64,000 nt of DNA from assembly GCF_011386835.1 (NCBI RefSeq), contig NC_088809.1, forward strand, positions 1,116,001-1,180,000, read 5' to 3'. This document shows, in pieces, positions 46,852 through 63,700 of this stretch (its first letter is position 1; each line of letters opens with the position of its first letter). The notes beneath the pieces are model-generated. The model had not been told where the DNA came from and searched no databases. It worked only from the letters and a program-made list of their open reading frames with translations. This DNA comes from Chrysemys picta bellii (taxonomy: Eukaryota). Made by a program: the position numbers and the translations under genes.

Positions 46852-47850
46852 CTAGGGCTCGCCCAGGTTGGTGATGATGGCCGCGTTATAGATGAGGTCG
46901 GAGATGTACCCGAGGGAGGTCTGCGCAGGGAACACATCCCAATAGGAGAGCCCCTCACCGGCCGTGGGGTCCGCTCCCTGCGGCCCCGCCTGGCCGGGGG
47001 CAGCCACAGGCCACTGGGCTCCCGCCTGGCTGCAGGGGGGCTGGCAGCTGTCCTCCCGCAGGAGCTGCCCCTGGAAGGCAGAGACCAGGCCCGGCAGCGC
47101 TTGGCCCAGGCACTGCTGCGGGGAGCTGCCGGGCAGGCGGAGCTCGGGCACCTGTTGGCTTCTGGCCCCTTGTCCCTGGGGCGGTGGGGGGCAGGAGGGG
47201 GGCGGTTTACTGGCCAGAGCCCTCCGGCAGCTCGGCTGCTCCAGCTTCCCGCTCTTGATCCTCCGGGCGCGGCGGTTCTGGAACCAGACCTGGGGAGAGA
47301 AGGGCCGTGAGGGACTCCCCTGCCCCGGCCGCAGACCCCCGCTGGCGCCCCCCGACGTCCCGGCCCGCGGGATACGACGGGGCACCAAGGGCTCCCCCGC
47401 CCCGCGGCCAGCCCGCCCCGCCCCGCCCCGCCTCACCTGGATCTTGGCCTCGGGCAGGTGGGTGAGCTCGGCCAGGCGCTCGCGGGTGCCGATGTCGGGG
47501 TAGGGCAGCGCGGCGAACACCCGCTCCAGCTCGCACAGCTGCCCCCGGCTGAACGTGGTTCGCTTCCTCCTCCTGGGCCCCGCCGGGCAGCCCCCCGCGC
47601 CCCGCTCCGGCTTCGGGCGGCTCCCTGCGGGCAGGGGAGACGGGCAGAGCTCAGCCCCCAGCCCTGGCCCCCGCGAGCCTCCCCCGGCCCCAGGCTGCCC
47701 CGTCCCCGGTGCTCTCTGCTCTGGACACCGACCTGCTTGGGGCTCGGGCCGGCGGGCCAGGGGGGCGCCCCGGGCGGGCGGCGGGCAGCGGCCGGAGTCT
47801 CCGTCGGGGAAGAAAAGGCGCGGGCCGGGTGCGGGGCAGGCCCGGCTCAT
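46852..47850 (-). CDS. SEBOX: SEBOX paired-class (Q50) homeobox protein, 3 exons, 247 aa
   Basis: Exons 47850-47733, 47624-47437, 47289-46852. Homeodomain [45 protein letters not shown]|[17 protein letters not shown]-type C-terminus [26 protein letters not shown]-like GATAAAAG at 47927-47934 (-). Lies next to TMEM199, as in mammals. The exon 1 boundary is less certain. Confidence 0.92.
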
Positions 47851-48099
47851 TCTCTTGCCGGGGTCCCTGCGCCCAGTCCAGTCCCGCGGCTGCGGCTCAG
47901 CGCGGCCGCCCGGCGCCTCCCGGGGCCTTTTATCCCCCGCTCCGCTCCCCCGCCCCGGCCAGCAGCTCCCAGGGGTCTGGGACCGCCCAGGGCGGGCGCG
48001 AGCCGGCTTTGATCCCGCGGCGTCTGACAGCTGCGGGCTGCCTCTCCCCCCCCGCCGCGCCCGTCGGGGGATCCCAGCCCGGCCCATCCCAGCCCCATC

Positions 48100-48581
48100 C
48101 CTACCCAGCCCCGCTAACCCATCCCAGCGCCCCATTCACATCCGAGCCCCGCTAACCCATCCCAGCCCCATTCCCATCCGAGCCCCGCTAACCCATCCCA
48201 GCCCCATTCCCATCCGAGCCCCGCTAACCCATCCCAGCGCCCCATTCCCATCCGAGCCCCGCTAACCCATCCCAGCCCCATTCCCATCCGAGCCCCGCTA
48301 ACCCATCCCAGCCCCATTCCCATCCGAGCCCCGCTAACCCATCCCAGCGCCCCATTCCCATCCGAGCCCCGCTAACCCATCCCAGCCCCATTCCCATCCT
48401 AGCCCCGCTAACCCATCCCAGTGCCCCATTCCCATCCGAGCCCCGCTAACCCATCCCAGCCCCATTCCCATCCGAGCCCCGCTAACCCATCCCAGTGCCC
48501 CATTCCCATCCGAGCTCCGCTAACCCATCCCAGCCCCATTCCCATCCGAGCCCCGCTAACCCATCCCAGTGCCCCATTCCC
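48100..48581. repeat. 36/38-bp minisatellite, 13 copies, directly upstream of SEBOX
   Basis: Unit CGCTAACCCATCCCAGCCCCATTCCCATCCGAGCCC. GCTAACCC recurs at 48113, 48151, 48187, 48223, 48261, 48297, 48333, 48371, 48407, 48445, 48481, 48519, 48555. Confidence 0.95.
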
Positions 48582-50111
48582 AGTCAGCCCGGCCCGGCCC
48601 AGCCCAGCGCCCCAGGCCAGCCACGTGCCCCAGCGAGCCCAGCCCACCGCCGTCTCTCTCCACCCCCAGGGACGGGGCTGTTTTGGGCTCCCTAGCTTGG
48701 GGCTGCTTTAGCCAGGTCCCATGCCCTGGGCTGCGCCCCTTGCCCACTGCTGTCTCCCAGCCCTTCCTCCAGCGGGGTGGGAGGCCAGGCCCTGCCCGTG
48801 CTCTCGGGGGATGACAAAGGGGGGCCCAGGAGCTGGCCCAGTTGCTGAGGAAGGGAGGGCCCAGGCACTGAGCAGCAGCGCCTCCCGTCCCCCGAGCCTC
48901 GGGGTAACTAACCGGGGCTCCGCCTTCCCCGCTGAGACCTGGGGCAGGTTGCAGGTTCCAGGTTTGGAGTTTAAAAGGCTAAGCTGTGACCCAGCCGGGA
49001 GGGAGTCTCACAGCAATATGTGACCCCAGGCAGAGCAGCTTTGGTTGTGGGGCCACATGCTGAATGCTGAGGACGAACCCAAACCCTGATTGTGAGCCTC
49101 CCTTTGCTCTGGGACGTCCCTTTGGGTCGGTTCCTCACCGGTTTCTTGCTGGCACCCGCCAGGTCCCATCTAATTCCTTGCTGGGTGCTGGCAGGGCTGG
49201 CCCCAGTTCCCCACACCGGATATTCCCCTGTCGCCTTTCCCTATGGGCCACCCGTCAGCGTCTGCCCAGGGCCATGCTCCAGGCCTGCCCCCTCCGCACT
49301 CGCATTCCAGGCTTCTCTGTGGGAAATCCTACCCAATCTGGCAGCACACAGGGCAGGGTGTCCTGGGGAAGTGGCTGTCAACCTCCCAGCCTGGCAAATG
49401 GCCAGCGGCGCCAGCACATCCTCTATTCATGCCTGGAGGCTGAGAGGCTGTGCGCAGCTGCCCGCAGGCTCCTCTGTGGCGTGATGGTGTCAGCAGTGGG
49501 TTGTCTGTCCTGAACGGCGTAGGCCCGTCTGCACCTGCACGGTTCAGCATGGAACTGCCTTGGCCTTACAAGGTGTTGCGGATTGTGGGGGAGTTAGGGC
49601 CCTGCACCCCCGTCTTCCTGCGATTCACCATGACTCTCAGCCAGCCAGTAAAGCAGAAGGTTTATTTGGATGACAGGAATACAGTCCAAGACAGGTCTTG
49701 CAGGCACAGACAACAGGGCCCCCCTCAGTTAGGTCCAGCTTGGGGTCCCAGGGCATGCCAGCCCACCCCCCTTGGGGGGTCAGAGCCATCTCTGCCTCCC
49801 AGCCATCTCTCCAGCCTCCTTCCAGCCTGCTTCCAGCACTCTCTCTCCAGCGACCCCTCCCACAGCCTTTGTTCAGTTTCCCGGGCCCCGGAGTCATCTG
49901 ACCTCCAACCCCCTCCTGGGTTCTCATGTTACAAGCTCAGGTATGTTCCCTTGGGCCGGCTCCCATCCCCCGATGCAGACCATCCTAGTCACACTCCCCT
50001 GTCAGCATTCACACACCACAGTAAGAACAGTCCCAGTTCGTCACATCTCTCCCCCCTTCGAGACCGAACTGAGCGGGGTCACTTTAGCCAGTGACCTGGG
50101 GAAGTTCGAAC

Positions 50112-52871
50112 CTACCCCCGTTCCCATGGATGCCCCCGCATCCCTCCAGTTCCTTGGTGGGAGTTACACCAGGCCCCTTCCGTTCCACGCCCCCCCTTAG
50201 GTCGGGGGTGCTTGATGGCACTCGCAGTTCGCATGTGGGAAGGTTTATGCGGCCTGTGCCCTTTTCCCACCCCCATACCTCTGGGGTTCCAACTGGGCTG
50301 TGGTCTTCTCCCAGCGCTCCAGTCTGGAGGTCTGTGCTTTGGGCTCTCTTGGTTTAGAGCCGCCCTTTTAACCTTGGCCACCCTCTGGAAAGGATCCTTT
50401 ATGCTGGGCAAGGGTCCTAAAGCTGTTTTCCCCTTGTCCCAGGCCTTCCTCCCCCTCTGACAGGGGTCACAGGATCCGCAGTACTGTCGGACAGTAACAA
50501 AGACCCCAGGCCAGTAAAAGCTCCGTAGCAGCCTCTGCTGGGTACGCCAGGTTCCCTGGTGCCCTGAGAGGGGAATGTCATGGGCCCGGCACAGCAGCTG
50601 GCGGCGATACTTCTGGGGTACCACCAGCTGCCTCCTGATCCCCCCTGACTCCATTTTCCCTGGGGGAGCCCATTCTCGGTACAGGAACCCCTTCTCCCAC
50701 AGGAACCTTTTCCGGCCACCTCGTTCCAGGGTCTGTACCGCATTGAGGTCGGCCAGGTCCCTTATCTTCCGCAAGGAGGGGTCTCTCTGTAACTCGGCCT
50801 GGAACTCAGCAGCTGGGACAGGGATGGCCACCTGCTCTTTCTCGCCCGCTGGGTCCGAAGCTGCAGCCTCCCTGAGCCGCGTCCCTGGGCGTTCCCTCCC
50901 CACCAGGTTAGGGTCCTGCGCCTCAGGCAAGGCACCCCCCCCAAGGCCAGGGCGCAGGGCCCCTCGCCGGCTCTGACTGCGGGTCACAACCAGTGCCTTT
51001 TGGGGGTTGCTTGGCCAGTTCTCCAGGTCCCCCCCCATCAATATCTCAGTGGGCAAATACGGGTGTACCCCCACATCCTTGGGGCCCTCCTTGGCCCCCC
51101 ACTTCAGGTGTACCCTTGCCACGGGCACTTTGACTGGTGTTCCGCCCACCCCCGTCAGGGTCAGGTAGGAGTTGGGCACCACCTGATCTGGGGCCACCAC
51201 CTCGGGCCGGGCCAGCGTCACCTCTGCGCCCGTATCCCAGTATCCATTGACCTTCCTCCCATCCACCTCCAGGGGAACGAGGTACTCTCTCCGGAGGGAC
51301 AGCCCCGCGCCCACCGTATAAACCAAAAACCCTGAGTCTGGGGCATCCAGCCCCCTAGAGGAGCTGGCCTGGGGCCCTTCTCTCTCTTGAGCAGTTGATA
51401 AGCTGCCAGCCCCTCTTGCGTGAGAAGCCTGCCCCTCGTCCGTCTGGGCCTCTACCAAGTTAACCCTATGCGGGTTCGGTCTGCTCAGTCTGTCCTTGAG
51501 CTTGGGGCACTGGGCCCGAACGTGGCCTCTTCGGCCGCAGTAATAGCAGCTCATGTCCTGTGGGTCCCCTCGAGCCGGTCGGTTGTCCCTGATGCTGGGC
51601 ATTTCCCGGGGGAGGGGATTCCCAATATTCCCCCTTTGGGAGGTCCCAGGGTGACTCTCTCTCTGCATCGCGGCGGGCCTGTTCCTTTGGGGCTCCTCCC
51701 TGCCAGCCCCTGACCGGCTCTTTACAAACTCATCAGCCAGCTGCCCGGCGTGTCGCGGGTTCTCTGGCTTTCTGTCCACCAACCACAGCCTCAGGTCGGA
51801 TGGGCACCGCTCATACAGTTGCTCCAGTACCAGCAGTTTAATCAGGTCCTCCTTCGTCTGGGCCCCACCAGCCCACTTGCTGGCGTATCTTTCCATGCGG
51901 ACGGCTAGTTGCAGATATGAGATCTCAGGGGCTTTATCTTGACTCCGGAACCTTTCCCGGTACATCTCAGGAGTCAGCCCAAACTCACGTAGCAGGGCCT
52001 TTTTGAATAGTTCGTAGTCCCCTTTCTCTGCCTCTCCCAGTTGGCGGTACAATGCCACGGATTTGGGGTCCAGTAAGGGGGTAAGGACCCGGAGTCTGCC
52101 CGCGGGATCAACCCGGTGCAGCTCGCAGGCCGTCTCAAAGGCCTCCAGGAAGTCGTCCATGTCCTCCCCCTCCTTGTATGGGGCCATGATGCACTTATCA
52201 AAGCTCCGTGCAGTCCTGGGTCCCCCCTCACTCACCGCAGCCGGGGGTTCGCTGCCCCTCAGTCTCGCCAGTTCCAGTTCATACTGTCTTTGTCTCTCAT
52301 TCTCCTCCCGTTCACGCTGATGCTGTCTCTCTTTCTCCTCCCGTTCACGCTGATGCTGTCTCTCTTTCTCCTCCCGTTCACGCTGATGCTGTCTCTCTTT
52401 CTCCTCCCGTTCATGCTGTCTCTGTCGTTCACGATCCTCCAGCTCTCTCAGTTTTAGCTCTTTCTCCCATTCCAGCCAATTCCGCTCCACGGATGCCGAA
52501 CGTCGCCGGGAGGATCCTCTGCTGGCCGGCGGGCTTCGCCGGGGGGATCCCCTGCTGGCCGGGGGGGCCACGGCGCCCTCGGTATTTGCTGGGCTCCTCC
52601 CCACCCTTCCCCTAGGCATAGGAAGGAGGGGTCTCGGGCAGCCCTCAGCAGCCGGCTGACCACTCCCAGCTGGGACAGACACTGGTGCCTGCGCTGCATT
52701 TGCCAGGCTGCTTCCCTGAGACACAGGGATCAGTTCATTCGCGCGATCTTCCGCCTCCAGCTGGGCGATGAGCTGTTCTTTGGTGAGCCTCCCAATGCGC
52801 AGCCGCCTCTGCTTGCACAGCTCCACCAGGTCGCTCTTAAGCCGCTTGGCATACATCTTCCTGCTGGCCAC
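50112..52871 (-). CDS. 919-aa Gag (HeH-like N-terminus, coiled coil, capsid/SCAN, CCHC knuckle) + aspartic protease + integrase HHCC finger only
   Basis: SCAN-like PEMYRERFR...KWAGG...LLVLEQLYERCPSDLRLWLVDRKPENPRHAGQLADEF. Knuckle CYYCGRRGHVRAQC (51548-51507). Protease WDTGA (51236-51228). Integrase finger HDIPLSGH-x-CGSCDPC. Homology stops at PFQRVA; no DDE core, no YxDD. Confidence 0.93.
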   Translation of the reverse strand: MASRKMYAKRLKSDLVELCKQRRLRIGRLTKEQLIAQLEAEDRANELIPVSQGSSLANAAQAPVSVPAGSGQPAAEGCPRPLLPMPRGRVGRSPANTEGAVAPPASRGSPRRSPPASRGSSRRRSASVERNWLEWEKELKLRELEDRERQRQHEREEKERQHQREREEKERQHQREREEKERQHQREREENERQRQYELELARLRGSEPPAAVSEGGPRTARSFDKCIMAPYKEGEDMDDFLEAFETACELHRVDPAGRLRVLTPLLDPKSVALYRQLGEAEKGDYELFKKALLREFGLTPEMYRERFRSQDKAPEISYLQLAVRMERYASKWAGGAQTKEDLIKLLVLEQLYERCPSDLRLWLVDRKPENPRHAGQLADEFVKSRSGAGREEPQRNRPAAMQRESHPGTSQRGNIGNPLPREMPSIRDNRPARGDPQDMSCYYCGRRGHVRAQCPKLKDRLSRPNPHRVNLVEAQTDEGQASHARGAGSLSTAQEREGPQASSSRGLDAPDSGFLVYTVGAGLSLRREYLVPLEVDGRKVNGYWDTGAEVTLARPEVVAPDQVVPNSYLTLTGVGGTPVKVPVARVHLKWGAKEGPKDVGVHPYLPTEILMGGDLENWPSNPQKALVVTRSQSRRGALRPGLGGGALPEAQDPNLVGRERPGTRLREAAASDPAGEKEQVAIPVPAAEFQAELQRDPSLRKIRDLADLNAVQTLERGGRKRFLWEKGFLYREWAPPGKMESGGIRRQLVVPQKYRRQLLCRAHDIPLSGHQGTWRTQQRLLRSFYWPGVFVTVRQYCGSCDPCQRGRKAWDKGKTALGPLPSIKDPFQRVAKVKRAALNQESPKHRPPDWSAGRRPQPSWNPRGMGVGKGHRPHKPSHMRTASAIKHPRPKGGRGTEGAWCNSHQGTGGMRGHPWERG
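52290..52425 (-). repeat. 33-bp coding tandem repeat (about 4 units) in Gag
   Basis: Encodes (ERQHQREREEK)n, a charged coiled coil. Units start at 52301, 52334, 52367 and 52400 on the + strand. Confidence 0.9.
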
Positions 52872-54744
52872 TCACCGGCCTGTGTGCTCACAGCTCCCCA
52901 CAGTTCCCAGGGGGACCCCTAGTGTGCCAGCCCTTCTCGAGGTCACCACCTCTCTGCCAGGGTCGAGCTGCAGACTCCTCCGCCCCTGGGACCACTCGCT
53001 GCGATCCCCCCGGGGGACCCTGTTACTGCAAAAGTCCTTCTCGCTGGTCACACACTCCCAGGGGTAATAACCGTCTCTCTCCCACTCTTCAGCAGGCCTG
53101 GTCCCCGTCAATCCCCCTTCGTTTTACTGCTCCCCAGTCACTTACTGCAGGAAGCGCCGTCCACGGGGTGCAGTAGATCCCGCCGCTGCCACCAGTTGTT
53201 GCGGATTGTGGGGGAGTTAGGGCCCTGCACCCCCGTCTTCCTGCGATTCACCATGACTCTCAGCCAGCCAGTAAAGCAGAAGGTTTATTTGGATGACAGG
53301 AATACAGTCCAAGACAGGTCTTGCAGGCACAGACAACAGGGCCCCCCTCAGTTAGGTCCAGCTTGGGGTCCCAGGGCATGCCAGCCCACCCCCCTTGGGG
53401 GGTCAGAGCCATCTCTGCCTCCCAGCCATCTCTCCAGCCTCCTTCCAGCCTGCTTCCAGCACTCTCTCTCCAGCGACCCCTCCCACAGCCTTTGTTCAGT
53501 TTCCCGGGCCCCGGAGTCATCTGACCTCCAACCCCCTCCTGGGTTCTCATGTTACAAGCTCAGGTATGTTCCCTTGGGCCGGCTCCCATCCCCCGATGCA
53601 GACCATCCTAGTCACACTCCCCTGTCAGCATTCACACACCACAGTAAGAACAGTCCCAGTTCGTCACACAAGGGGCCACGTGACCTGCAGCTGCTGGACT
53701 GTTTGGGGAATTGAGTTCCCAGGGGGATAACTAGCAAGTGCTCCTCTTGCCAGGCTGCCAGATGGAGGGAGCAGGCCCCTCTGTGCCATCCATGGCTAGC
53801 ACCAGAGTGTGACACTGGAGTAGCCTCCCCCAGGGCCCTGTGAATTGGGACTGAACGAAACACCAGCACTAACTGTCGCCCCTGGGGGGAGGAGGGGCGC
53901 GGATAATTGTGCTGGTCTCCGTTTGCAGGGCCGGTTGGCTCGTGCTGCCCGGGTCACACGCGTGGTGGAAGTGTAGCCCGGGGACGGCCAGCTCCTTCTG
54001 TGCCCTGGTCAGTTCCTGGCTCAGGGACAGAGGGGGCTGGAAGGTGGATTCAGTGTGAATGAACCAAGCAGGCAGAGGAGCAGGGGGGGAAGGGGTCAAT
54101 GGGGCCAAGGCTCCCGGTGGAAGTGCAGGGGGGGCGCGGGGTTTCAGGCCTCTTCCTCTCATCTGTGGGGGGAGGATACTGGCCTCTCTGCGGCAGACAG
54201 GACGCAGCGCTGCCCATGTGCCGTGTGCAGGGCCCCTCATGGCACGGAGGGTCCAGCGAGTCGTGGCCCTTCCTGGTGCCCCTGCTGCTCGCCTGGCGGC
54301 TGCCCTGTGCCAGGTCCCAGCGTTGCGTTTCCTCCAGGCCTGGTCACCCGCTCAGCGAGGTTCCCGCAGTCACTGCTCCAACTGCAGCCACTCGCCTCTC
54401 CCCGCTGAGCGGGGCTCGGAGCTGGCTGGGGTCATTCCCCTCTTCTCACCTCTGAAAGGGGCTGGCTTTGGCCAGCTTCCAGCGGCAGGTGGACCCAAAC
54501 TCTGCCCCCTTCTCGCTCTGGCCCCTCCTCGGGGAGCCCCCCTGCAGCTGGCCACTTTCCGAGCCAGGGGAGAAGTCTGGGGGAGGGGCTAGCTCCCGAA
54601 GCTGGAGCAGGTGAATATTTAACCGGGGAGCTGGCGCTTGTTTTGCTTGGGCAGCTCTAGGCTGGTCGGGGGTGGTTCTGGCTGGAGAAGGGGGCGGTTG
54701 GGCAGCCGAAGAGCTGCCGATTTCACCCTGCAGAGAGCTGTGGG

Positions 54745-57700
54745 ATGGAGCCGGAGCTGGAGCAGGGGCAGGAGGCCAAGGCGCGACATCTATCTGCGCA
54801 GTAAGCCCGAGAGTCGCAGGAGCTAGTGGGGAGGCCATGCCATCTCTCTGGGGCCACCGAGGGACTAAGGGTGGCTTGGGCACCCAGTCCCGGCAGGGGG
54901 AAAGGACCACAGGTCCCTTCAGCCTAGGGGGGCCCTGGAGTCTCCCATCCCTTCACACCAGGTGCAGGGTTCCGTTCCCTCTGGCGGTGGAAGGGTTAAC
55001 TGCATACCTGAGCAGCTGGTCTGGCACATCAGGGCTCAGCTTGGGAAGCGCCAATGCGGCTGCATGGCCCGGTGAGACAGGCCCCGGCCGGCTCCCCCAG
55101 GGGCGGCTCTCGGGGCCGCCAGAGTCCCTGCTCCCCACACGGCTTGTTTTCCAGGAGCCCAGCAGGCGACCGGGAGGATCCCACGGACAGGAAGGAAACA
55201 CGTCTCCGGGTGGTGCTCAGGTGAGGGGGCAGGGACGGGCGGCTGATGGGTGCCAGGTTTCGGGCCGGGCACCTGGGAGCAGGAGGGTGCCCGCATGGTG
55301 ACTGATGCCTTTCCCTTTGGCTAGGGTTCGGCCCCTGACCTGCCCGGAGCGCCGCGGAGGGGACCAGCGTGTGGTGCACTGCCTCGGGGACAACACCGTC
55401 TACGTGAGTGCCCCACGCTGGAGAGGCCACAGCTGGGCGCCGGCCTGAGTGGGCCTGATCCTGAGCCAGCTCTTTTCTCCCCGTGCCAGGTGAAGGCGGC
55501 CGGGCAGGAGGCGGCCTTCAGGTTAAGTGCAGTGTTCGATGCAGGCGCGTCCCAGGAAGGGGTGTTTGAAGGCAGCGGGATGAAGCGACTCATAGAACTG
55601 GCAGCGAATGGGTGAGGCTGAGGCAACCCTGAGTGGAGAGTGTGTGCTCCCCCTCCCCCATCCCCTCCCCCTCCCCCCACTCCCATCCGTAACTCCCAGC
55701 CAGCCACGCACGCGCTCCCCCTCCATCTGCCCCCCATAGCCCCCCGCCAGCCACGCACGCGCTCCCCTCCCCCTGCCCCCCATAGCCCCCAGCCAGCCAC
55801 GCACGCGCTCCCCCTCCACCTGCCCCCCATAGCGCCCAGCCAGCCACGCACGCGCTCCCCCTCCACCTGCCCCCCATAGCCCCCAGCCAGCCACGCACGC
55901 GCTCCCCCTCCACCTGCCCCCCATAGCCTCCCGCCAGCCACGCACGCGCTCCCCCTCCACCTGCCCCCCATAGCCCCCAGCCAGCCATGCACGCGCTCCC
56001 CCTCCACCTGCCCCCCATAGCCCCCAGCCAGCCATGCACGCGCTCCCCCTCCACCTGCCTCCCCCCATAGCCCCCCGCCAGCCATGCACGTGCTCCCCCT
56101 GCCTGCTCCCCCCCACTGTGGCCTCCTTCCCAGCAGCCATCTGCAGCTTTCTACCTACACACGCCTCTACAGACTCACCCCCAGGCACAAGCATCCAGCA
56201 GCACCCACCCACTCCCTCCCCAGCAACATCCTCCTCACACCAGCGCGTGCCCGCAGCCGTGCGCCCCTTCACCTCCGCGCTCTCAGGCACCATCTTATGC
56301 CAGTGCGGAACCGCTGGGTCACGGGCCACCAGCCGTTCCTACCACAGGGCACGTCTGCATTACCTGGCTCCGCCACGAGAGGGCGCTTTGCACCCGCCAA
56401 GGAAGGGGGCAGGTGCTCAGCGGCTCTTCTGCCCCCTCCCCAGGTTCTCCTGCACCGCCTTTGCCTTTGGACAAACAGGCTCTGGAAAGACCTACACGTT
56501 AATGGGCCCCTTAGCCCAGGTGAGAGACCCTCCTGGGGGCAACCTACACCGTGTGAGCCGATACCCCAACCAGCGCCTTACTGCGCCTCCCGGATCACGA
56601 GCCCCGGCCTCCCCCAGCAGGGGGCGCTGTGGGGAGCAGGGCAGGGTGCTAGCTGTGGGGGGAGCTCACAGTTACCCCAGCCCCGGCCTCTCCCAGCAGG
56701 GGGCGCTGTGGGGAGCGGGGCGCTGGCTGTGGGGGGAGCTCACAGTTACCCCAGCCCCGGCCTCCCCCAGCAGGGGGCGCTGTGGGGAGCGGGGCGCTGG
56801 CTGTGGGGGGAGCTCACAGTTACCCCAGCCCCGGCCTCTCCCAGCAGGGGGCGCTGTGGGGAGCGGGGCAGGGCGCTGGCTGTGCAGGGGAGTTCCCAGT
56901 TGCCCCAGCCTCTCCCAGCAGGGGGCGCTGTGGGGGGCAGGGCAGGGTGCTAGCTGTGGGGGGGAGCTCCCAGTTACCCCAGCCCCAGCCTCTCCCAGCA
57001 GGGGGCGCTGTGGGGAGCAGGGCAGGGTGCTAGCTGTGGGGGGAGCTCACAGTTACCCCAGCCCCGGCCTCTCCCAGCAGGGGGCGCTGTGGGGAGCAGG
57101 GCAGGGTGCTAGCTGTGGGGGGGAGCTCCCAGTTACCCCAGCCCCAGCCTCTCCCAGCAGGGGGCGCTGTGGGGAGCGGGGCACTGGCTGTGGGGGGGAG
57201 CTCCCAGTTACCCCAGCCCCGGCCTCCCCCAGCAGGGGGCGCTGTGGGGAGCGGGGCAGGGCGATGGCTGTGCAGGGGAGTTCCCAGTTACCCCAGCCCC
57301 AGCCTCTCCCAGCAGGGGGCGCTGTGGGGGGCAGGGCAGGGTGCTAGCTGTGGGGGGGAGCTCCCAGTTACCCCAGCCCCGGCCTCTCCCAGCAGGGGGC
57401 GCTGTGGGGAGCAGGGCAGGGTGCTAGCTGTGGGGGGGAGCTCCCAGTTACCTCAGGCCCGGCCTCTCCCAGCAGGGGGCGCTGTGGGGGGCAGGGTGCT
57501 GGCTGGGGCTGGTTCTCAGTTTCCTGCTGCAGGGGGTGGAAGCTCAGGGCACCCTGCCATTGGCTTTCCGAGACTTCTCCTCTCTCTGCAGAGCGAGGGC
57601 CAGCCGGCGACTCCCTACCTCGGGGGGCTGATGCAAAGGGCCTTTGTGTGTCTCCTGGAGCAGACGCAGCACTACAGACCCGGCCTCGTGCTCAGTGCCT

Positions 57701-60700: not shown

Positions 60701-63700
60701 GGGCCGACCCTGCACCTCCCTAGAGCCCGGATGTGTGGGCAAGCCCCGGGCATGGCCTGGTACCTAGGACAGAGGTCACTGGCAAAGCAATGCCCCCTAC
60801 ACACGAGGTGGGCAGGGCTGCACCGTGTGTTCCCCAGCCACCTCAAACCAGCTGCTACCCGCGGCAGCGTGACTCTCCCAGGCAGCGAGGCCCACCCTGG
60901 CTGGGCTCAGGGAAGGGGCACCCCAGCCCCACTCCCCCAGGCAAATGCCGCTCCTCCGACCAGGTCCCAAGCCCAGGGGCTCACCCTCAAGCCAGGCAGC
61001 TGGGCTCTCCAGCAGCTCCACAATACCCACCCAGGCTCTGCCTGCCTCCCCCCGCCTCTCGCCACAGAGAGTCCCTGCCATGCCTGGCTCTCTGCAACTC
61101 AAGAACCACCGCCAACCCTTCCCCAGCAGCCTGCAGGCCGCCCCAGCTCAGTCACCCGACCGGGGAGGGGGGCGCAGCTTAGCTGGGCCTGGACCCCCGA
61201 AAGGTCAGCACTGCTGGGCTGGGTGACTGAGCCAGATCTCGCTCCTCCTGGCCCCTCACGCCCAGCGAGGGGGTGCCCCAGCGCACTACCCAGAGGGCGT
61301 GGTGAGCAGGGCAGCGCTGGGCTCCGTCCATGCGCTGAGTCCGGCCTGGCACGGGGCAGGCACCCGGCAGGGGGGCTCTGCTAGAGTCTAGATGGATGGC
61401 TGGGGTGGGGCCCGGCGTCCACAGCTCACCGCGCTCTCCCCTCCCTATTGTCCTACTTGGCCAAGGAGGGAACCGATCCCGCTGACGAGCAGCCAATCCC
61501 CTGCCAGGGAAGGGCAACGTGCACTGGTGCAGGAGCTGACGAGATAAAGGGGCAGGGGGAGGGGCAATGCAGGCAGTGCCTGAGACCCCCGTGGGTGGGT
61601 GACAGCTGCTCTGCAGGGTGAGGGAACCCCTCAATAGCCAGGCCCTGAGCTGTGTGCGCGATGGGGAGGCATTTCCGAGTCACCTGAAGAACTAGGGGGG
61701 GAGGGTCTGGACTCTCAGTGCTGGCGTTGGGGGGCCGGCCCCGTGAGGGGCACTCGGCACGTACGGGGGGCGCTGGGCATGCAGGGGACGCGGGGTGCAC
61801 GCTGGGTGCACGGGGGGGGCACTCAGCATGCGGGGGGATGCTCGATGCATGCTGGGTATGTGGGGGGGCGCTGGGCGTGCGGGAGGCGCTGGGTGGGGGG
61901 GGCACTGGGTGTGTGTGTGGGGGTGCTGGGCGTGTGGGGGGCGCTGTGTGTGTGTGTGGGGGTGCTGGGCGTGTGGGGGGCGCGGGGTGTGTGTGCGGGG
62001 AGTGCTGGGCGTGCGGGAGGCGCTGGGTGTGGGGGGCACTGGGTGTGTGTGTGGGGGTGCTGGGCGTGCAGGAGGTGCTGGGTGTGGGGGGGCACTGGGT
62101 GTGTGTGGGGGGGTGCTGGGCGTGCGGGGGCACTGGGTGTGTGGGGGGAGTGCTGGGCGTGCAGGGGGACACTAGGCATGCACTGGGTGTGTGGCGTGAG
62201 GGAGGGTCTCTCTGCTGGACATGGCAGAGCCCAGGCCCGTCCTTCAGGCCAGTCTTGGGTTACTTGTGGGCCACGGTCCCTGGGGCTGGGGCAGACGCAG
62301 GCGCAGGCCCAGACCTGGCAGAACAGTCAAGCTCAGGGAGCCCCTCAGACGGGTGTTGCAGGAATTCCTGCTCTGGGCAGCGTCTCAGCCAACCGCAGGC
62401 CCCCTCCAGCCCCTGGAGCTGCTGGCTGGGTGACTTACCTGCCTGTCATTGTGGTGACCTCCCCTGCCCGAGTCCCACCTTGCCAGGTCTCCCCCCCCAA
62501 GCTGTGGGGCTGCTGGCTCTTGCCTCGCCGGGCACCGTGGCTGGGATGGCATGTTGGGATGCCTGGGGCTGCCCCACTCCCACTCATCTCGTTTATGTTC
62601 CAGGCACCTAGAGTCCCTCCCAGCCCTCAGCAGCTGGGGCCAGGCCCGACGTTCCCCCGAAGCTGCCCCCAGCTCCTGCAGCATCCAGGCCCTGCCCTGC
62701 GCCCACCCTGCCCCCAGCGCAGCCCAGTGTGGCCACGTGAGTCTCCTCTTCCTGTCTGACTTGGCGCCCGAGGCCCTGGCCCCTGACGTGTCCTGCCGGC
62801 CGTGACGCCCCAGGGGAGCTGCCGCCCCAGCGTCTGGGCTGGTTCGAATCTGGCTGAAAGCCGCTCCTTTGGGGCCCAGCTCAGCACAAAAGGCAGAGAA
62901 CGGATGGGCCATGGAGCCTGGACGCCCGTCTCCCTTCCAGCGGGACACCTGCTCCAGCTTCCGCCCTGGCCCTGGCGCCCCCAGCCATGCACGGAGCTAA
63001 GCCCCAGCACACACGGCTGGACGCCTGCGCCACGTCCCCTCCCGTGCTCTCTTCCTCTTGCAGATACTGCCTCCTGTCCATGCCTGCCGCTGCCCTGCCA
63101 GCGCTCCCAGGCATGGGCCATCCCCTGCAAGGCTGGCTGGGAACAGGAAGTGGAAGCTTTCAGCCTAAGGGCTCTACTTGTCCTTCCAGCTGCCGCCATG
63201 GGAGGTGCTCACTGCCCAGAGTGGTTCCAGGTTCCAGGGGGCCAGCCAGGGCAGCCCATGGGAGGACCCGGCTCAGCCCTGGCCCCAGAGCCAGCAGCGC
63301 CCTGTGGCTCCCTGGTTACTCCATGGGAAAAGGTGAGAGTCACCAGCCTGGGGCCAGGAGTGAGTCTGGCCGTGGGGCTGTGCAGGCAGGAGCACAGGCC
63401 CCCAGGACAGGGCTCAGGGCACATCAGAAGGTGACCCAGGGATGGGGGGCAGGCAGTGGGGTGGGGCAGCCATGGCCAGATTTGATGTGGGCCCCAGGCT
63501 CACTGCACATGCAGCCTCTGGCAGGTTAGTGGCCTCCTGTGCTCCTCTGGGCCACCAGCCCTGGCCCCAGTACTCAGCCCAGCCCTTGCTTGCGCTGCAG
63601 GAGCCTGGGCCGAAGGAAGAGCTCCGTTGGCTCGTGTCTGCTCCTGAGAGACACCCAGCAGCAGGGCCCTGAGCCTCCCCCCGGCCTGGAGGGGCAGGTC

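Follow-up and report, generated by a model that had tools for sequence, protein, structure and literature searches.

This report concerns a long terminal repeat (LTR) retrotransposon that lacks the integrase core, reverse transcriptase (RT) and RNase H (RH), and which lies in a stretch of Chrysemys picta bellii DNA of 64,000 nucleotides (NCBI RefSeq assembly GCF_011386835.1, contig NC_088809.1, positions 1,116,001 to 1,180,000 of the forward strand; hereafter the window). The sense strand of the element is the minus strand, and it reads from right to left in window coordinates, which are used throughout.

Structure of the element

The two LTRs are direct repeats with TG...CA ends, identical at 472 of 472 positions in repeat search and pairwise alignment, and a perfect 5-bp target-site duplication (TSD), CAAGG, stands outside both of them (Table 1). 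A primer-binding site (PBS) begins 2 nt past the 5' LTR, with 12 contiguous matches counted from the CCA end of tRNA-Leu(AAG), and a 13-nt polypurine tract (PPT) adjoins the 3' LTR. All structural features of an LTR retrotransposon, i.e. LTRs, TSD, PBS and PPT, are therefore present. A preliminary description of this DNA, made from the sequence alone, had noted the same two LTRs without visible difference, the perfect duplication, a tRNA-Leu PBS and the PPT, and each of these holds on closer analysis (its span, 49569-53673, includes both TSD copies). For the identity of the PBS, the complement of the 18-nt stretch was scanned in a metagenome collection and tRNA genes were called with ARAGORN; all eukaryote-type tRNA genes with a PBS match at the 3' end in these contigs were called as tRNA-Leu(AAG). 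Two bacterial tRNA-Met genes match the PBS at 18/18 positions and are irrelevant in a turtle host. Neither a second copy nor a solo LTR was found within the 64-kb window, and Rfam gave only sub-threshold chance matches on the element. A sigma-70 promoter scan was set aside as not meaningful for a vertebrate element. The CpG observed/expected ratio is 0.23 in the LTR (49574-50045), 0.51 in the internal region (50046-53196) and 0.38-0.49 in the flanks, and a GTAAGT donor-like site occurs in the 5' leader (53140-53145, minus strand).

The internal region holds a single open reading frame (ORF). It is uninterrupted as previously described, but the 919 codons then reported are reached only if counted from a GTG (50112-52871, minus strand); from the first ATG at 52856 it encodes 914 residues. 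By our own arithmetic, the chance of an equally long open frame in sequence of such composition is ~1e-12 per start. Its products would be a Gag with a SCAN-type capsid domain and a CCHC knuckle, a protease (PR) and, directly after PR, the N-terminal zinc-binding domain of an integrase (IN). The N-terminus of the ORF gave no Pfam SAP match. The number of units in the 33-bp gag repeat differs from one paralogue to another, as it does when deleted copies are compared with complete ones, and gag therefore holds a length-variable coiled-coil-like stretch. Because the Pfam RVP match is weak (E=0.037), the identity of the protease was decided by its fold. In an AlphaFold model residues 500-640 have a mean predicted local distance difference test score of 82 (core >90), and this modelled domain matches the protease structures of Ddi1, HIV-1 and XMRV (Foldseek E ~1e-5); moreover, the Asp of the DTG motif is invariant in an alignment of 32 sequences. 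As modelled, residues 500-640 hence hold a retropepsin-fold protease. No rve, RVT or RNase H domain was found in the element, either with Pfam or by six-frame tblastn with complete relatives.

Homology to complete relatives is unbroken from the ATG to 50376 and ends exactly at PFQRVA, the point named in the preliminary description, where the complete relatives run on into the integrase core; the deletion junction thus lies between 50376 and 50375. In a six-frame comparison homology restarts only at 50107-50039, with a remnant of the last 23 pol codons that is in another frame than the ORF and crosses the PPT into the LTR. These 23 codons and the PPT are common to the deleted element and the complete copies. 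Relative to P0128, a complete C. picta protein, ~777 codons are missing, and one ancestral rearrangement would have removed ~2.3 kb with the integrase core and C-terminal domain, RT and RNase H. However, ~250-270 nt of unmatched sequence stand between the breakpoint and the pol remnant. The view of a simple internal deletion is correct in that the enzymes are gone, but judged by this insert the change is a rearrangement and not a clean deletion.

The tail encoded past the junction was compared with several possible sources. Between 50375 and 50108 no match to IN, RT or RH was obtained in any frame by six-frame tblastn with P0128 and sea-turtle proteins, and this blank also speaks against an out-of-frame C-terminus of RNase H. 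A patchwork of integrase remnants, which was suggested by a scattered MAFFT alignment, was rejected as well, because a local alignment allowing free long gaps in the ORF frame scored like shuffled sequence (137 vs a shuffle mean of 132; 65/200 shuffles scored at least 137), leaving only the last 23 codons in the other frame as real. A comparison of the tail with all other parts of the element and window yielded chance 11-mers only. Directly before ORF residue 824 the element carries a pyrimidine-rich, splice-acceptor-like TTCCAG (50385-50390, minus strand), and two gene models, from Macrochelys and Caretta, start matching the element at this residue, just past the motif.

A deleted family and its probable complete partner

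Complete relatives were retrieved by word search. At least 16 C. picta bellii models named 'uncharacterized protein', the proteins nearest to the window ORF, carry both the junction and the tail, on 11 different chromosomes or scaffolds. They are 705-930 residues long (871-930 in 15 of them) and 86-99% alike. The junction, PF[QR]RVA/KVKRAALNQES... (slash at the breakpoint), is identical in all 16, and the tail is the same except for frameshift variants in its last ~30 codons. The window ORF itself is absent from the protein collection, in which its best match is 98% identical. Going by these proteins, the deletion belongs to a dispersed family and not to one copy.

A homologous junction and tail, with the same derived zinc-domain residues, occur in Gopherus evgoodei (P0252, UniRef), the deleted lineage with its junction being common to Emydidae and Testudinidae. 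When the full library was searched with the 87-residue tail alone using HMMER, only three family-related turtle proteins were matched, i.e. P0252, a model of Macrochelys suwanniensis and one of Caretta caretta, besides one repeat protein matched by chance. All three tail matches set in slightly ahead of the junction, by a few residues. What precedes the match in the Macrochelys and Caretta models is something other than the zinc domain, so that these two document the tail but not the complete architecture. The tail is thereby present in four families (Emydidae, Testudinidae, Chelydridae and Cheloniidae).

Other turtle proteins also contain parts of such elements. For instance, in P0004 of Lepidochelys kempii the RT/RNase H connection follows straight upon Gag-PR-H2C2 and an initial piece of the integrase core (...RYPEAVP/HFSAIA...); it was rejected as the same deletion since its breakpoint differs, and it is a second deleted form that arose independently within this element group. 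Large pieces of the element ORF or of the tail are also found in turtle models with host-type names (P0005, P0016, P0024, P0037, P0250 and P0264; the names include CDK12-like, immunoglobulin superfamily, GBP1-like and dystrobrevin beta, and a Caretta model is among them). Such models could reflect chimeric transcription or errors of annotation.

At least eight complete C. picta bellii models, of 1552-1644 residues and 96-99.9% identical to one another (complete copies include XP_065438320 and XP_065440911), have the domain order SCAN, CCHC, PR, H2C2, rve, SH3, RVT_1 and RNase H. The integrase of P0128 precedes RT, which is the Gmr1-like order, with integrase straight after protease, that the preliminary description gave for such elements. 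Gmr1-like elements are defined by an integrase placed between protease and RT, and they are reported to be abundant in turtle genomes (bioRxiv 10.1101/2025.03.03.638093). Classified by its SCAN domain and domain order, the window element is a deletion derivative of the Gmr1-like clade (Ty3/gypsy, Metaviridae), not a complete member.

The ancestry of the ORF is mosaic. The window ORF is ~96-98% identical to the complete C. picta copies over residues 1-480, ~80-87% over 481-625 and ~71% from 637 to the junction, where it is no closer to them than to sea-turtle or tortoise copies. This lineage-specific block from residue 637 is 93-100% alike among deleted copies, and gag/PR of the complete partner family is ~98.5% identical to that of some deleted copies. 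In the deleted copy P0111 this switch occurs abruptly: if the repeat block is left aside, residues 1-636 differ from P0128 at 9 positions and include an unbroken run of 140 identical residues, and from residue 637 on 56/191 residues differ. The recombination boundary is at ~50948. One gag type of C. picta deleted copies (P0002, P0003 and P0124) and one protease type (window element and P0001) match no sampled complete copy. Among complete elements, IN-RT-RH is 91-95% identical between Chrysemys P0128 and sea turtles (P0008, P0126 and P0127), while gag is only ~62-69% identical; this contrast points either to very uneven constraint or to exchange between lineages.

Phylogenetic trees of 21 hand-chosen protein rows, with Pelodiscus as outgroup and other paralogues left out, agree with such a mosaic. 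In the tree of residues 640-827 all deleted copies of C. picta and Gopherus form one clade (100/99), and approximately unbiased (AU) tests rejected forcing together all C. picta rows (p-AU 7e-5) or all tortoise rows (p-AU 6e-5). In the tree of residues 298-625 the deleted copy of Gopherus falls among tortoise copies of complete type (100/98), those of C. picta join the complete copies of C. picta (98/99), and here it is the forcing together of deleted copies that was rejected (p-AU 3e-35). The common junction and tail are independent characters, and they agree with the 3' tree. Since the 3' block groups by deletion across families and gag/PR groups by host, an old deleted lineage seems to have recombined repeatedly with its resident partner. 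The simplest reading indicated by these sequences is one old deletion, after which the 5' part was replaced again and again by recombination with the complete element of each host.

Table 1. Coordinates of the element and of other repeats in the window, and domain positions in the complete C. picta protein P0128
Feature	Position	Strand	Remarks
Target-site duplication, left copy	49569..49573	+	CAAGG; repeat search and pairwise alignment
3' LTR (element orientation)	49574..50045	-	472 bp, TG...CA; identical to other LTR
Remnant of last 23 pol codons	50039..50107	-	91% identical to complete relatives
Polypurine tract	50046..50058	-	13 purines, adjoining 3' LTR
Lineage-specific block	50046..50948	-	ORF residue 637 to 3' LTR
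Single ORF	50112..52856	-	914 codons from first ATG, plus stop; Gag (SCAN capsid, CCHC), PR, IN zinc domain, tail
In-frame tail past junction	50115..50375	-	87 codons, specific to deleted lineage; ~50375-50125 unmatched to IN, RT or RH in any frame
Last codon homologous to complete elements	50376..50378	-	A of PFQRVA
Integrase N-terminal zinc-binding domain	50448..50621	-	Integrase_H2C2; Pfam E=1e-17; zinc ligands kept
Retropepsin-fold protease core (modelled)	51015..51299	-	catalytic DTG Asp at 51234-51236
CCHC zinc knuckle, nucleocapsid	51501..51551	-	Pfam zf-CCHC
SCAN-type capsid C-terminal domain	51711..51971	-	PF02023, E=6e-11, above curated cut-off
33-bp tandem repeat in gag	52273..52437	-	Glu/Arg/Gln-rich coiled-coil-like stretch
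Primer-binding site	53177..53194	-	17/18 complementary to tRNA-Leu(AAG) 3' end + CCA
5' LTR (element orientation)	53197..53668	-	472 bp; AATAAA at 53289-53284
Target-site duplication, right copy	53669..53673		CAAGG
GC-rich minisatellite	48083-48582		36 bp x13.6; overlaps start of homeobox frame
GC-rich minisatellite	55695-56115		47 bp x8.9
GC-rich minisatellite	56600-57505		80 bp x11.7
GC-rich minisatellite	61851-62168		~55 bp x5.7
P0128 SCAN	residues 277-362
P0128 CCHC	residues 418-433
P0128 protease DTG	residue 522
P0128 H2C2	residues 727-783
P0128 rve	residues 802-899
P0128 SH3	residues 1033-1081
P0128 RVT_1	residues 1208-1367
P0128 RNase H	residues 1432-1561

Origin, mobility and age

We consider that the element is very probably a recent insertion of a semi-autonomous Gmr1-like LTR retrotransposon, moved in trans by a complete partner with which it has exchanged its 5' part. 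That the deleted form itself is mobilised, as a distinct non-autonomous family, had been anticipated in the preliminary description, and it is supported by the at least 16 dispersed paralogues with identical junction and tail and by a partner with nearly the same gag/PR as some of them. Transcription would start from the 5' LTR, and the RNA of the deleted element would be packaged together with that of the complete partner. Reverse transcription, primed by tRNA-Leu, would then be carried out by the RT and RNase H of the partner, and integration by its integrase. Template switching between co-packaged RNAs could swap the 5' part and thus renew gag/PR, and such exchange may keep the deleted element matched to its partner over long periods. 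More speculatively, the element may also make its own Gag-PR-IN(zinc domain) polyprotein, which could supply capsid and protease or contact the partner's integrase.

Could the deletion be private to the window copy, or even a collapse in the assembly? The junction was searched for beyond the window copy, at the protein level, and its identical occurrence together with the tail in 16 C. picta proteins, and in homologous form in one Gopherus protein, refutes both notions almost completely. A host gene family domesticated from gag/protease would explain why the ORF is long, intact and equipped with a SCAN domain, as well as the NCBI name of the paralogues ('uncharacterized protein LOC...'), but we regard it as highly improbable, because the window copy has identical LTRs, TSD, PBS and PPT, while the paralogues are many, dispersed and closely alike, with a gag that tracks the complete element. 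It also seems improbable, though less strongly so, that horizontal transfer rather than common descent brought the deleted lineage to several turtle families. The occurrence of the tail in four families would fit a transfer, and so would the similarity of IN-RT-RH in Chrysemys and sea turtles, a high one for hosts so far apart; however, the gag/PR trees follow host groups, and by our own estimate the tail identities (65-77%) are consistent with slow neutral drift. Substitution rates in turtles are slow, and this was weighed against horizontal transfer.

The most serious alternative concerns the ORF, which could be dispensable in an element that is a passive hitch-hiker moved in trans; the frame would be open because the copies are young and their gag/PR is overwritten by recombination from a partner under selection. 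We hold this to be a substantial possibility, though not the more probable one. In several deleted copies gag/PR hardly differs from that of the partner, and its intact frame can therefore be explained without selection acting on the deleted element. The frameshifts that distinguish copies in the last ~30 tail codons also fit such a hitch-hiker, as does the single Gopherus copy, which has lost one zinc-ligand His and is changed at 4/23 conserved vs 24/179 variable columns, showing no avoidance of the former. On the other hand, the block of residues 637-827, which is not refreshed from the partner, has an open frame in each of the 16 C. picta copies, and it differs from turtle complete copies at 43/179 variable but 0/23 conserved columns (33 Gmr1-like proteins; Fisher p=0.005; column majorities were used for counting only). 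The 23 conserved columns include all zinc ligands. This pattern could nevertheless predate the deletion: changes certainly post-dating it fall on 0/23 conserved vs 13/179 variable columns, which is not significant. The comparison is thus suggestive, but not proof, of constraint on the 3' block in the replicating lineage.

Several points weigh against our reading of the element as a recent, partner-driven insertion from a recombining family. All family comparisons were made at the protein level on gene-model proteins, and such models favour intact ORFs. LTRs, TSDs and PBS are known for the window copy only, the features of the paralogues and of the partner being taken from proteins. That the partner has the same LTRs and occurs in the very genome of the window copy, whose ORF is not in the protein collection, is presumed. 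The AU tests used groups that were defined with a first quick tree already in view, and the p-values are weakened accordingly. As to age, the absence of differences in 472 bp places LTR divergence below ~0.6% at 95%; with turtle-like substitution rates of 0.5-1e-9 per site per year the insertion would be younger than ~3-6 million years at 95%, a figure that is a bound only, as gene conversion between the LTRs is possible. The insertion is young, but 'very recent', as it was called before, exceeds the evidence and could apply to this insertion alone. The deleted lineage appears old, being found in Emydidae and Testudinidae, with the tail also in Chelydridae and Cheloniidae, and if inherited vertically it is much older than the insertion. 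A further reading goes beyond this: a stable two-component vertebrate system in which the lineage has lasted ~100 million years across hard-shelled turtle families, kept compatible with any complete partner resident in the host by repeated 5' recombination and with its polyprotein under selection. We put this forward as doubtful and tentative. If it is true, the selected polyprotein could package its own RNA preferentially or join the integrase assembly of the partner.

Genomic surroundings and known systems

An open frame on the minus strand at 46855-48135 contains a paired-like (Q50) homeodomain (Pfam E=4e-14) into which an in-frame, intron-like insert intrudes after position ~46; it is similar to homeoboxes of the SEBOX type. 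The frame and the retrotransposon share their orientation, the latter being located ~1.4 kb upstream. On the other side of the element, a short match to a kinesin motor domain (~56442-56510, plus strand; profile positions 73-95) probably represents a single exon of a kinesin gene, whose transcription would run away from the homeobox gene. With these two genes being divergent, the element would sit between them, in DNA of 65-69% GC. Four GC-rich minisatellites also occur in the window (Table 1).

Amniotes have few active LTR retrotransposons, and the SCAN domain in tetrapod zinc-finger genes has been proposed to derive from Gmr1-like elements. The present case offers a concrete, recently mobile pair in turtles, composed of a complete element and a Gag/protease-encoding dependant, with a phylogenetic sign of repeated recombination between them. 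Such a pair could give insertion-polymorphism markers in emydid turtles, and it is a natural setting in which to ask whether a dependant element profits from encoding its own capsid.

Complete turtle Gmr1-like elements (the P0128 cluster of C. picta; P0008 and P0126 of sea turtles) likewise have a SCAN capsid, CCHC and protease followed by the integrase zinc domain, and gag of the window element is 96-98% identical to that of P0128. Unlike them, the window element is without integrase core, SH3, RT and RNase H, has an extra tail of ~250-270 nt, and carries a linker and H2C2 block of a separate lineage. The plant TR-GAG elements are also non-autonomous LTR elements that have kept a gag ORF. These encode Gag only, whereas the turtle element also encodes a protease and an integrase zinc domain.

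In wheat, RLG_Sabrina_SA, a Gypsy element described as 'semi-autonomous', has an intact GAG-protease ORF but no RT or integrase (PMC9744471). It shares with the turtle element the open Gag-protease frame, the missing RT and integrase, the multiple copies and the co-evolution with other elements, and the turtle family may be regarded as a vertebrate counterpart of such plant elements. However, it belongs to a plant and to another Gypsy clade, has no integrase zinc domain, and was linked to its partner by LTR trees and activity profiles (PMC9744471), while the turtle link comes from gag/PR recombination. The IAP I-delta-1 and ETn/MusD elements of the mouse are deleted LTR elements too, which rely on coding-competent relatives in trans and are a source of recent insertions; they differ in being retrovirus-derived class II endogenous retroviruses, of which I-delta-1 is described as recent and ETn is non-coding (PMC1331978). 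The turtle lineage, on the contrary, is Gmr1-like and apparently old, and it retains Gag-PR and an integrase remnant. No description of the deleted turtle family was found in the literature searched, with Repbase outside that search. The kind of element is already known from wheat and mouse, and what is of more interest in the turtle family is its recombination signature and its apparent age.

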